Assembly (NCBI GenBank): GCA_002104945.1
Contig: MCFH01000051.1
Location: 310,001-374,000, forward strand
Direction: 5' to 3'
From: Piromyces finnis finn
Lineage: Eukaryota > Fungi > Neocallimastigomycota
DNA length: 64,000 nt
Made by a program: the position numbers and the translations under genes. This document shows, piece after piece, positions 1 through 14,960 of the stretch; within the stretch, counting starts at the first letter, position 1, and each line of letters starts with the position of its first letter. Below the pieces are notes generated by a model. It searched no databases. It was not told the origin of the DNA and was given only the letters and a program-made list of their open reading frames with translations.

Positions 1-811
1 CAGATTCTGATCCAGAATTTTCAAATTCAACATCTATTGGGCAATAATATGGATATTTATAACCTGAATATTGGAACTCATCACAATCAGAACTATCAAA
101 ATCTTCCCATTCATTTTCATCATCTGATTTCTTTCCACAAGCAGCATCAGTTGGTGGTGGTGGCATTCCTGGGCCTGGTGGTGGTGGACATCCATTTGGT
201 GGTGGTGGCATTCCTGGGCCTGGTGGTGGTGGACATCCATTTGGTGGTGGTGGCATTCCTGGACCTGGTGGTGGTGGACATCCATTTGGTGGTGGTGGCA
301 TTCCTGGACCTGGTGGTGGTGGACATCCATTTGGTGGTGGTGGCATTCCTGGGCCTGGTGGTGGTGGACATCCAGCTGGTCCGTGACGATGACCATGATG
401 TGGACCATAACCCCATTTTCTCCATTTTTTCATCATTTTCCTATCCCATGGTGGACAACATGAGTCCCCATATGGACCATGACATCCTTGATGGCCTGGT
501 GGACAGTGTAAACCACCAAAATCAAATGTACCAAAACCTGACTTTGGAACAACATCATATTTTACTTTTAAGCAAAATAATTCACCTGCTTCTTCTTCAT
601 CTTTACCTGAATTTTTGTTTAATTTGAATTTAATATAGTTTTTACCATCATCTCCTTCAATATTAATTTCATTTAAACCTTTTTGAAGAAGTTCTAAACC
701 ATTGTTTATATTTTCATTCTCGACAGATTCGCCACTTTCTTCATTAGAAATTTGAAGTGATTTTAATGGTAAAGTAGTCATTAATAATAAATCGTTCTTT
801 TTTGAGTCCAT
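1..811 (-). CDS. Pro/Gly/His/Cys-rich repeat protein of unknown function; runs off the left edge of the window
   Basis: Hand translation of a minus frame missing from the ORF track. ATG at 811 gives MDSKKNDLLL...HCPPGHQGCHGPYGDSCCPPWDRK...GPHHGHRHGPAGCPPPPGPGM(PPPPNGCPPPPGPGM)n PPPPTDAACGKKSDDENEWEDFDSSDCDEF..., with no stop down to base 2 (270 codons). Confidence 0.8.
   Translation of the reverse strand, partial: MDSKKNDLLLMTTLPLKSLQISNEESGESVENENINNGLELLQKGLNEINIEGDDGKNYIKFKLNKNSGKDEEEAGELFCLKVKYDVVPKSGFGTFDFGGLHCPPGHQGCHGPYGDSCCPPWDRKMMKKWRKWGYGPHHGHRHGPAGCPPPPGPGMPPPPNGCPPPPGPGMPPPPNGCPPPPGPGMPPPPNGCPPPPGPGMPPPPNGCPPPPGPGMPPPPTDAACGKKSDDENEWEDFDSSDCDEFQYSGYKYPYYCPIDVEFENSGSES
153..374. 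repeat. 45-bp coding tandem repeat, ~5 copies (15-aa unit PPPPNGCPPPPGPGM)
   Basis: Unit GGTGGTGGTGGCATTCCTGG(G/A)CCTGGTGGTGGTGGACATCCATTT starts at 153, 198, 243, 288 and 333. Confidence 0.95.
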
Positions 812-1544
812 GTTTTCAAATGAATATGTTATATAATAAACTTTTCGATATTATATATATATAAATATTTATTTAATATCTATTATAAAATTTATTGTCT
901 TTAATATATTTGTCTTTAGAATTAATTAGTGAATTAATTATTTATTTTAAATATTTGTCTGTTTTTATTCAAATAAAATAAGAAAATATAGCAACTATTT
1001 TTAATGTATATATATTATATAATTAATATTATTAATTATCTTTTTTAAATAATTCAACTAATGATTTTTAAAAAAAAAAAAAAAAGCAAGGAATAAACTT
1101 TTCAATTTATACTCATTCTAAAAAATGTTATTTTTCCTTTTTTAATGAAATTTAATTATAAATTTTAATAAAAAAAAACTATTTATAAATTATAGAATTT
1201 GATATTTGATGTATTATAATATTCAAAATAGTATAGAAAAAAAAAGATATATTATTACTAATATATAATTAATAAATATTATTTTGAATATTTTGTTATA
1301 TTACTAATTGTAAATAGGATTAGTAATTCAATAACCTAGAAAAATAAAAATTTTAATATACTTATTTTTAATAATATATTGAAATATGTAAATATTTAAT
1401 ATATACTAATATATTAATTTTAATATATTTTAAAATATAATATAAATAAAAAATTTTAGATTTTCTATTTTACTAATATTTAACAAAGTATTGATATTTA
1501 TCTAAAATAAATATAATCTATTCACTTAAATATTGTAAATACAA

Positions 1545-1660
<116 letters not shown>

Positions 1661-3624
1661 CTTATCCATTATTTATATATATGTTAATACTATTATTATT
1701 AAAAAATAAAATATAAGCATTTATAAATATTTATATATTAAAATGAAATATATATATCATTTTTTAAAAATTGAAAGCATTTATAATATAAAGTTATTCT
1801 TTATGAAGATAATCCTTGGCTTTTTTATTTAAAACAGCCAATGATTAAATCTAATAATAATAACTATTATATTATATTTTTTTTTGAAAAAAAAAAGTTT
1901 TTCTCTATTTCTGCAGAATTAGAATTAAAATTTCAATTAATAAAATTAATATATTTATCTTAAATTATAGAATGAATATTATTATAGTATAAATATAATA
2001 TAAATATCATAAATATAATAAATATTATTTCATCTCTTTTCTAATTATTCACTATAACACTCTCTTCTTGTTAACTTTTAAGGTTTATTCATTTATTCTC
2101 TTTTTTTCTTTTTTATTTAAACAATAATAAAAATATACTTTTTACTATTTATTTCACTCTTTTAAGATTTTAAATTTGAAAAATAACCATTTAAATATAT
2201 AATTACATTCTATAATATACTACAGCATAAAAAAACGTAAATTTATTGGTTCATTCTTGGCATATGTAATAAAAAGGCAAACAAACTTTTATAAACAATC
2301 TTATTAATAATTAGTAATATAAAGAAGTTCGTTTTTTTTTTACCATTTTGACAGTTAAATTATTAATTATAAAAATAAAAAAAAAAAAGGCAATGTCACT
2401 TATATTACTAATGATGAATTCAATTTTTAATTTAATAAAATTAAATATTAAATTTCAATTAATAATTATATTGAGAAAACTTTTAAAAATGACATTAAAC
2501 TTTAATTACTATCAAATAACTTTTGAGTAACTTTAAAAACTGTAATTCTGTAATTTTTTAGGATTTTTTTATAATAAAATTATTAGTATTTTTTAATATT
2601 TAATCCTTTGATAATATTTTAAATTGTATTTTTATTATAATGAATGTAATTATATGTAATTTTGAAATTTCAGTAAAGGAAAAAAAGTTTTAAGTTATTA
2701 AGTAATAAGAAATTTTTAATGTTTAATTGATGAAAAATATTGTAATATCAAAAAATTTGAGAGTAATTTTAACTGAAATTAAAATACATATATATTAAAG
2801 AAGAATAAAATAACTTTTCTATTAACATAACATATATATTTAGAAATCTTTAATTATAAAACAAGTTTTAAATTCATTTATTCTCTTTTTTATTTAATAA
2901 GTATTATATATTATAATCAATATTTTTTTACATTTGATTAGGGTTAGAATATTGTATTAGAAGATTTTATAAAAAAATTTTATTTTTGACTATTATTTTG
3001 TAATAAATTATTTCTTGAAATATGTAATAACTAGTATAATTACTAACATTATTTTATAGATTTAATAAAAATGTATAATTAATTGTTGATTATCAATTAT
3101 TATTGTAATTATTTTAAATGTGATAATCATAAACTTCTTAATGATTAATAATATATAATTATTTGATTTATTATTATTATATAACTTTGTTTTCAATATT
3201 GCAATAGAATAACATTAAAAATATATTTATGAAGAATGATATTAAAAAAATTTCTAATTTATGGTAATCATTTGCTTTTATTTAATTTCTATTTAATAAA
3301 TTCATTTTGAGTGGTACTCTAATTTTATGAAATAAATATATATATATATTGACTTCAATCTTACTAACAGTTTTATTTTTATTTTGAACTTTACTTAAAA
3401 TAAATTTTTATCTACTTTGATACATCTAGAATAGTAGTTATGTCAAATTAAATTTTTTTTTATACTTTGTTCCTACTAAGCATATTACAATATTTGGTTA
3501 TGGCTTATATTTTATATTATTTTATTCATTATATGATATTTCATAATTATATATTCTTTGATTTCTATTTAATCTATTTAAAATTTAGTATTTCTATAAT
3601 ATTTTAGACAACAAAGAATAATTT

Positions 3625-3969
3625 TGAAAATGTTGGATAAAAATATATCAATCGATATCAATATCAAAAAATTCGTGTCATTAAAAAAAATTGAATAGAA
3701 AATATATCATTTTTTTTTAACTATAAATAATTAATTATAATTCAATCTATTGAATACTACAGGAAATGCTTCGAAAAGACAAGCTTTCTTCTCTTTCCAT
3801 TTCGTATTCGATTTGATTTCATTCATATAAAAATATATATATATATATATATAAAACTATAATCGAAAGATCCTTGATCTTGGAGAGGAATGACACGAAT
3901 TTTTTGATATTGATACTGATATCAATATATACATTATATACAATGATATGTTTTTATTCAACATTTTCA
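3625..3969. mobile_element. MITE-like element, copy 1 (long imperfect TIRs, TG...CA ends)
   Basis: Perfect 27-bp inverted repeat: TATCAATATCAAAAAATTCGTGTCATT (3656-3682) and AATGACACGAATTTTTTGATATTGATA (3889-3915). Outer inverted repeat: TGAAAATGTTGGATAAAAA (3625) and TTTTTATTCAACATTTTCA (ends 3969). Confidence 0.7.
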
Positions 3970-4016
3970 TAACTGAATGTTTAATCATTAATATTATAAA
4001 AATATATTATATTAAA

Positions 4017-4592
4017 ATGAAATTAAGTATTATCTGTATTGAATTATTGGCACTATTATGCTTAAGTTGTGCCTATTTCATTAATAATGAAGAAATTACA
4101 TTATCTAAAAGAGATGTAGCAAAGAATGTATGGAATTTGGGTGGATTAGTTGTTGATGTTGGTATAAAAATTGGTATGTTTAAAGATAGTTATAGAAAAC
4201 ATAAACAAATACTAAGAGGTCAATGCGAAAGTGTTGGTGTTAGACCATATGGTACTATTGAAATTTGCTTACAAGGTCCTAATAGATTATATGGTAACTG
4301 GCGTAATCCATCTGTATTTGGATGTTATCATTTTGGTAAAGCATATACTAATTCTTTTACTGAATGCTGTGTTGTAGTTGCTAATGGTAATGTTAAAGTA
4401 CATAATACTATGTGCTCAGGACCAGCAAAAGATTTATTCAATGTTGATATATTTAAACGTTTATATTATCCTCAATGTGCTTATCGTACTAATAAATTTA
4501 ATACACAATGTGGTAATGTTAGTAATAAAACAAGAAAATGTGTTAACTTAAAGGGAAGTGTTGAAAAAGAGTGCAAAGATTATCCAAATTAA
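4017..4592 (+). CDS. Small secreted Cys-rich protein (191 aa): signal peptide, short propeptide, two KR dibasic sites; preprotoxin/effector-like
   Basis: The in-frame ATG at 4017 gives MKLSIICIELLALLCLSCA (hydrophobic signal). LSKR and IFKR are Kex2-type sites; 10 Cys after the first KR; intronless. The ORF-track start at 3948 lies inside the repeat. Confidence 0.8.
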   Translation: MKLSIICIELLALLCLSCAYFINNEEITLSKRDVAKNVWNLGGLVVDVGIKIGMFKDSYRKHKQILRGQCESVGVRPYGTIEICLQGPNRLYGNWRNPSVFGCYHFGKAYTNSFTECCVVVANGNVKVHNTMCSGPAKDLFNVDIFKRLYYPQCAYRTNKFNTQCGNVSNKTRKCVNLKGSVEKECKDYPN

Positions 4593-4713
4593 GTATTTTT
4601 TAAAAAGTATTCTTATATATATATATAAACACTTCCATTATTATAGATTATATAGTATATATTATTCTATCTATTTATATTTATAGTCATATTCATATTA
4701 TATATAAATGTAT

Positions 4714-5041
4714 TAAAATGTATTAAAATATAACAATATCAATATCAAAAAAATCGTGTCATTAAAAAAAATGAATAGAAATATATAATTTTTTTTAACT
4801 ATAAATAATTAATTATAATTCAATCTATCGAATACTACAAGAAATGCTTCGAAAAGACAAGCTTTCTTCTCTTTCCATTTCGTATTTGATTTGATTTCAT
4901 TCATATAAAAAAAAAAATATATATATATATATAAAACTATAATCGAAAGATCCTTGATCTTGGAGAGGAATGACACAGATTTTTTGATATTGATACTGAT
5001 ATTGATTATATACATTGATATATTTTTATTCAACATTTTCA
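4714..5041. mobile_element. MITE-like element, copy 2 (direct repeat of copy 1; left end degenerate)
   Basis: 4737-4995 aligns by eye with 3656-3915 at roughly 90% with small indels. It has the same inner TIRs (4737-4763 and 4969-4995). Its right end ATTGATATATTTTTATTCAACATTTTCA is at 5014-5041. Confidence 0.7.
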
Positions 5042-5327
5042 TATATATAATAATTTTAATTCCATTAAAATTATTACATATCATACAATCATACAAAATA
5101 TCAAAAATATTATTTTTAAAAATACCACACTCTCAGGTTAATTTTAATATATTATATTATATTATTTTAAATATATTTATTATTATTATTATTGTTATTG
5201 ATATTATAATTCATTCTTTTTAAAATTATTGAGGAAATTATTAATATTTTTAAAATAGTTTTTTTTATTAAGCTATTTTAATTTTTTAATAAGTATTAAG
5301 GATTAGAGTACAACATAAAAATTAAAA

Positions 5328-14417: not shown

Positions 14418-14960
14418 TTCCGAGTGCATTTCTCCCATCGATCAGAGTTAGCTCCAATGGTGGTTCTTAGAGAAACGTTGGCTCATTCCTATTGCTAGGT
14501 GGTTGTGACCCTCCTGGTCTGTCATACTGTTTCTTCAGCTTCGACGCTCACTTAATCCATGTACATTAGATGCATGTCGTTGTACGATATTTCACAACTA
14601 CAATGCTAAGCCTCTTATAGTCAATTTGATCACGTGTCAACCGCCCCCTAATGTTTACACTTAAATTGATTAAGGAATATTATGTGTTTTTGGCATAGCC
14701 TAAGTCACCACTTATTAAGTTCTAATTTGGAATGTACCATGTACACTAGACCCTCTCAGGCCGGCTAGACGAGTGTTATTATCATAGTAGTAAATTAGAA
14801 AGTTCATTTATACTTACCTGAATATCATAACCCAACCCATGGCAAACCCAGTGGGAAAATCCACAGGCACTGACATCTGCGGGGTCGAACCAGAAGCCTT
14901 ATGTATGCTAAGGAAACGCCTTAACAACCAGGATAAAAACTGGAACGACATCATCGTTTT
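14367..14960 (-). mobile_element. tRNA-Ala(AGC)-derived SINE, ~575 bp, with poly(A) tail and 10-bp TSD
   Basis: GC-richer island in AT-rich DNA. T42 run at 14373-14414 is a poly(A) tail on the minus strand. TSD TCATCGTTTT at 14367-14376 and 14951-14960. The head (14871-14953) has B box GGTTCGACCCC and loop TTAGCAT in tRNA-Ala register. Confidence 0.8.

Follow-up and report, generated by a model that had tools for sequence, protein, structure and literature searches.

At positions 3625-5041 of the analysed stretch of Piromyces finnis DNA (the window; 64,000 nucleotides, C180:310001-374000, where C180, like C101, C151, C195 and C200 below, is a contig of the P. finnis genome), a single gene lies between two copies of one repeat, with all features on the forward strand. 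The genome comprises 56.46 Mb in 232 contigs with approximately 20% G+C. Repeat copy 1 (3625..3971, 347 bp) has both termini intact and consists of a left arm (about 3625-3682), core A (about 3698-3819), an A/T-TA microsatellite (3828-3855), core B (about 3853-3888) and a right arm (3889-3971). A 45-bp spacer (3972..4016) leads from its right terminus to the ATG of the cargo gene (4017..4592), an intron-free and uninterrupted ORF of 191 aa ending in TAA. Beyond a 3' flank or UTR (4593..4714) lies copy 2 (about 4715..5043, 329 bp), which starts about 120 bp past the cargo stop codon in direct orientation to copy 1; its right terminus (5014-5041) is intact, whilst the left one has decayed and shows a small tandem duplication (4703-4725). 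When aligned, the two copies are 95.7% identical (313 matches, 14 mismatches and 20 gap columns) and their homology ends at the repeat termini, the sequences beyond these scoring z = 1.7 and 0.9 against shuffles. An earlier note, made by reading this DNA alone, had described two direct copies flanking a single intronless gene, with the inner left end of copy 2 decayed, and these observations were borne out.

Imperfect inverted arms are present in both copies and each is predicted to form a long hairpin. In copy 1 a repeat finder matched the terminal 37 nt of the arms at 84% and the sub-terminal 32 nt at 94%, and folding of the single strand gave one long hairpin of -62 kcal/mol (z = -8.5 against 100 shuffles). 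The outermost ends of the unit (3625-3652 and 5014-5041) form an inverted match at 27 of 28 positions compared with 25 of 28 for the two ends of copy 1, confirming the earlier observation that the outer ends are the better pair, although this is a difference of two substitutions only. The terminal 28 nt of the right end of copy 2 are identical to the inner end of a repeat at a second locus on C101, described below, and as the two agree this sequence is probably the ancestral repeat terminus. With terminal inverted repeats (TIRs), small size and no coding capacity other than chance ORFs, both copies display the traits of a MITE. Neither of the two copies, nor the unit as a whole, had a target-site duplication (TSD) above chance when lengths of 2-12 and boundaries moved by up to 4 nt were allowed, in agreement with the earlier note. 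The sole candidates were two 4-mers at shifted boundaries, equalled by 52% of random position pairs, and around the whole unit (3625-5041) there was no candidate at all. A search for RNA genes in the repeat gave no Rfam match at E <= 1 and that identity was discarded. Tandem duplication of repeat plus gene, with subsequent loss of the second gene, was also rejected, since neither the sequence past copy 2 nor that before copy 1 resembles the gene side of the repeats.

The database model of the cargo gene (214 aa) starts at an ATG at 3948, inside the right arm of copy 1. This ATG is absent from copy 2 and from the C101 copy of the repeat, both of which have ATA, whilst family alignment and the signal peptide place the start at 4017, indicating that the 214-aa model is probably too long. 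The encoded protein has a signal peptide, a KR site at residues 31-32 and 10 cysteines in the mature part. A word-based protein search returned the window's own protein alone, but a full HMMER search returned 12 relatives at E <= 1e-3 (best 9.5e-44, 48% identity) from Piromyces sp. E2, Neocallimastix californiae, N. lanati, Anaeromyces robustus, Pecoramyces ruminantium and gut metagenomes, all of them annotated as 'hypothetical'. Conserved across the family alignment are the signal peptide, a KR site some 25-32 residues into the protein and the cysteine-containing motifs EIC, GCY, a CC pair and CSGP, and residues E82, C84, L91, G102, C103 and Y104 are invariant. No Pfam family matched the protein, an Atlas search gave no usable match, and metagenome scans for the context of the closest homologue gave no match. 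A structure model from the single sequence was not usable (pLDDT 39), whereas an AlphaFold model from 21 sequences (pLDDT 68.5) has a beta-rich core at residues 57-140 with pLDDT 80-90. This model had no significant match in the PDB, the best Foldseek hit having E 0.029 and the best VIA hit Z 4.0.

In these comparisons the family is restricted to Neocallimastigomycota, the anaerobic gut fungi, and its members are secreted and probably Kex2-processed. As relatives occur across the anaerobic gut fungi, the cargo gene is a resident and vertically inherited gene rather than a foreign one, and P. finnis has no other intact member of its family. The label 'secreted effector' given in the earlier note is consistent with these data in its first word only: the signal peptide and the family-wide KR site point to secretion, but with a family that occurs across anaerobic gut fungi 'effector' is not supported. 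The family, unnamed, lineage-restricted, secreted and cysteine-rich, may deserve a description of its own. At C151:714855-715010 (L036 2856-3014) the last 52 codons of the cargo gene survive as an old relic, with 77% nucleotide and 58% amino acid identity and one in-frame TAG; no repeat adjoins it.

Further copies of the repeat were sought by transitive DNA searches and exhaustive pattern scans of the P. finnis genome. The whole-genome DNA search returned the two window copies, pieces on C101 and diverged cores on C195 and C200, and searches with the C195 and C200 relics as query added one further old copy on C200. These older relics, at three sites outside the window and C101, show 71-86% identity. 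The terminal 19-mer occurs exactly at four sites only in the genome, three in the window and one at C101, and with up to 2 mismatches it gave 131 matches compared with 160 for the reversed control, which is chance level. By contrast, the sub-terminal arm 27-mer with up to 3 mismatches was found genome-wide at 7 sites and in the control at 0, four of the sites being window arms and the other three arms at C101, with none elsewhere. A 34-mer from core A was present at 4 sites, twice in the window and once each at C101 and C195. Two GC-richer core blocks are conserved in every copy, including the old relics.

The earlier note took the flanks for MITE copies, but the repeat does not form a multi-copy MITE family: with every arm site at one of two gene loci it is low-copy, with very few copies in the P. 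finnis genome, and is best described as a hairpin-forming (foldback or MITE-like) repeat of about 330-347 bp. The genome search for the TIRs proposed in that note, which was to reveal an autonomous element with the same ends, gave the four exact 19-mer sites and otherwise chance matches, and no longer element with these termini or arms was found in the 56 Mb of P. finnis sequence. The proposed count of solo against paired copies returned no young solo copies in the genome, each young copy lying beside the cargo gene or its pseudogene, and only the three older relics. The alternative raised there, that the repeat occurs only at this locus, does not hold, there being a second repeat-gene block at C101 and relics at the three further sites. 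The relics on C195 and C200 are intergenic, in unrelated surroundings and without a related gene close by, and the repeats would be remnants of an old dispersed family that is now inactive. At C200:950697-951062 (L035 2698-3063) a 121-aa cysteine-rich ORF ends exactly at the start of an old repeat relic. This ORF was considered as a cargo paralogue and rejected, as it is unrelated to the cargo protein (BLASTP E = 3.7).

A genome protein search identified one close paralogue of the cargo gene, at C101:366.5 kb. It is a pseudogene, interrupted by a stop already at codon 3 and carrying frameshifts and a 155-bp deletion. Homology between the C180 and C101 loci is confined to window positions 3620-4777, with no homology outside this block, and amounts to 92-97% across arms, cores, spacer, gene and UTR. 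The order of the shared block is repeat terminus, 45-bp spacer, gene (93-95%), 3' flank (97.4%) and left arm of the downstream repeat. The spacer is kept with the same junction (94.7% including the first 51 nt of the gene), and any promoter of the cargo gene would therefore lie in or adjoining copy 1. The left arm of the downstream repeat at C101 carries the same decayed terminus as copy 2, and it follows that both flanking repeats predate duplication of the block. The 155-bp deletion (L037 4039-4048 compared with window 4059-4232) lies between the similar 9-mers TGCTTAAGT and TGCGAAAGT, which suggests that it was microhomology-mediated.

The upstream repeat at C101 is complete but is split into two halves 5.7 kb apart (L033 4487-4692 and L037 3752-3953) by LINE material, with a 31-bp exact duplication at the junctions. 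The reading of the halves as separate elements, a 'half copy' and a 'solo' copy, was rejected, since they are parts of one element split by a LINE. The two halves were compared separately. The whole repeat, arms and core, is inverted relative to copy 1, and yet its junction with the spacer falls at the same nucleotide. The inner terminus is intact, whilst the outer terminus is only about 55-60% like the consensus although the rest of the repeat, cores included, is 92-96% identical to copy 1. Of the downstream repeat only about 75 nt are present, with unrelated sequence beyond. With an inverted upstream repeat whose outer terminus is decayed and a downstream repeat cut at about 75 nt, the C101 block has outer boundaries that are hard to compare with those of the window. 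The arrangement of intact outer and decayed inner ends, likened in the earlier note to that of a bacterial composite transposon, is not conserved at C101, where the upstream repeat has a decayed outer and an intact inner terminus. Independent insertions at the same site in two paralogues were rejected as an explanation, since the upstream flanks of the two loci are unrelated. The unique flanks are, for the C180 block, window 1-3600 and the sequence past a Copia element, whilst at C101 a spermidine-synthase gene lies to the left.

The insertion that splits the C101 repeat occupies C101:360692-366253 (L033 4693-10000 and L037 1-3754), and its 31-bp target duplication is unusually long. It consists, in order, of a 5'-truncated 3' fragment of a LINE with poly-A, approximately 150 bp with a short ORF fragment, and a full-length LINE that has a 1504-aa ORF and a poly-A tail of its own; the arrangement suggests that a tandem pair was retrotransposed in a single piece. 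Elsewhere in the window, 50 bp (14500-14549) within a putative tRNA-Ala-derived SINE match the 3' UTR of the C101 LINE at 85% (L037 3408-3460; L033 4946-4998 and 9908-9960), and the SINE may share its 3' tail with this LINE.

The conservation of the two core blocks in all copies, together with the position of copy 1 ending 45 bp before the ATG and copy 2 starting about 120 bp after the stop codon, could be taken to mean that the repeat is not mobile at all and is instead a hairpin regulatory or structural module, or a small RNA gene, forming part of the control regions of the gene. This is the most doubtful of the readings considered. It is at odds with the Rfam result, with the unrelated intergenic settings of the C195 and C200 relics, and with the gene relic on C151, which no repeat adjoins; inversion of the upstream copy at C101 would be intolerable for a directional promoter, although the gene at that locus is a pseudogene. 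A route through a circle, resembling an IS26 translocatable unit or eccDNA, appears very improbable as well, if not to the same degree. Recombination between the direct repeats would free a circle carrying one repeat and the gene, and integration of the circle into another repeat copy would restore the repeat-gene-repeat arrangement without a TSD. Direct repeats of approximately 330 bp at 95.7% identity would be good substrates, the route would account for boundaries at repeats, for the missing TSD and for the lack of a transposase, and the older solo relics show that integration targets formerly existed. However, two direct repeats in the donor orientation would be expected at C101, where the upstream repeat is inverted and the downstream one cut short.

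Copies 1 and 2 differ by 4.3%, the C101 repeat differs from the window copies by 4-11% depending on the block, and the gene with its flanks differs by 3-7% between C180 and C101. This small divergence among the repeat copies and between the two blocks indicates events close in time. When sites were compared among the two window copies and the C101 repeat, with C195 as outgroup, the pattern was star-like and did not give the order of events.

The composite transposon suggested in the earlier note would have required a transposase supplied in trans that used the outer termini and transferred the 1.4-kb unit, by moving or copying it, from one of the loci C180 and C101 to the other, in the manner of a 'macro' transposition. 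Two foldback or MITE-like elements would then have carried a secreted-protein gene in an early-diverging fungus. Composite transposition predicts a TSD, a source of transposase, solo copies and a second unit with the same outer ends, and the analysis found none of them. The repeat-gene-repeat architecture on which that suggestion was built is sound and is joined by the second block on another contig without homology outside the repeats. Two full direct elements surround the gene with outer ends matching at 27 of 28 positions, if in the window only, the inner left terminus was decayed before the duplication and would have favoured use of the outer ends, and the similar age of all copies is burst-like. 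C101 would then be a decayed product of a jump, in which recombination between its own arms flipped the upstream repeat, the outer terminus was scrambled, the downstream repeat was deleted past about 75 nt and the LINE was inserted. Three or four additional events would be needed to derive the C101 arrangement from that of the window, and they would leave an outer terminus far more diverged than the rest of the same repeat. Neither the unit nor copy 1 has a TSD, despite the intact termini of copy 1 and a divergence of approximately 4%, and neither an autonomous partner nor young solo copies occur in 56 Mb. We therefore regard composite transposition as unlikely, and a transposase cutting at the outer ends as the less likely cause of the duplication. 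The other mobile structure suggested, a Pack-type element, does not fit because each flank is a whole element with both arms and the cargo is a whole gene with its spacer and 3' flank.

The C101 locus is better accommodated by one homology-primed copying event than by composite transposition. We favour, at about even strength, the explanation that the block was copied by homology-primed repair or by segmental duplication of a resident gene that was already flanked by repeats. The cell's own recombination or repair machinery would have copied the block, with repeat homology acting as primer or boundary. In the form of ectopic gap repair, a break would have occurred at a resident, oppositely oriented repeat at C101, and the broken repeat end would have invaded the matching terminus of copy 1 and been extended through spacer, gene and UTR as far as the first 75 nt of copy 2, after which the copied end would have been joined to the other broken end by end-joining. 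A single event of this kind, primed at the terminal homology and closed by end-joining, would account for the inverted upstream repeat, the precise terminus-spacer junction, the truncation of the downstream repeat, an outer terminus unrelated to the others and the absence of a TSD. Since the duplication the C101 gene has become a pseudogene and a LINE has split the upstream repeat. A repeat-bounded segmental duplication would be an alternative route. Against the repair model, on the single outer side that allows a test homology stops at the repeat, as a composite transposon predicts and as a random segmental duplication would not. The gap-repair form also needs a young solo copy at C101, of which none survives elsewhere, and repair leaves without explanation how the gene first gained a repeat on each side.

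On present evidence a repeat-flanked gene was duplicated once and the duplicate was quickly inactivated. The repeat-gene-repeat structure is real and has one degenerate duplicate, but no evidence was found for its mobilisation as a composite transposon. Movement by transposition, had it taken place, would make the unit a rare eukaryotic counterpart of the composite transposons of bacteria. It would also offer a means of shuffling genes for secreted proteins in the anaerobic gut fungi, a group in which mobile DNA has received little study. The analysis also records a new low-copy hairpin repeat family for P. finnis and corrects a gene model whose database start falls inside a repeat.

Among known systems, bacterial composite transposons such as Tn5 and Tn10, and IS26 units, have their own transposase and generate target-site duplications. 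The P. finnis unit resembles them in that two element copies flank a cargo, the outer ends are the better pair and one inner end is degenerate, but it has no transposase and no TSD, and the outer architecture of its second copy is different. In Drosophila, foldback (FB) elements are hairpin-forming with long inverted arms built of tandem subrepeats, belong to a many-copy family, give rise to inversions by recombination between their arms, and in pairs can carry host genes to new sites, as in the 'transposing elements' of Ising. Like these, the P. finnis repeat is hairpin-forming with inverted arms and has a gene between a pair of copies, but tandem subrepeats in the arms and high copy number were not seen. 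In Pack-type elements one pair of TIRs encloses fragments of genes, whereas here a whole gene lies between two whole elements. The mimps of Fusarium form a many-copy family with TA target duplications and the autonomous partner impala, and are usually located upstream of genes only. These MITEs are present in the promoters of effector genes of Fusarium oxysporum (Schmidt et al. 2013, PMC3599309). The likeness to the mimps is that in both fungi a small non-coding TIR element directly precedes a gene encoding a small, secreted and cysteine-rich protein, but the P. finnis repeat has 4-5 recognisable copies, no TSD and no partner, has copies on both sides of the gene, and resides in a gut commensal rather than a pathogen. 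In ectopic gap repair and transduplication, as in P-element gap repair and Pack-MULE capture, copying starts at a terminal repeat, proceeds into host sequence and stops at an arbitrary end. This is the pattern seen at C101, although there the break itself is something we only infer.
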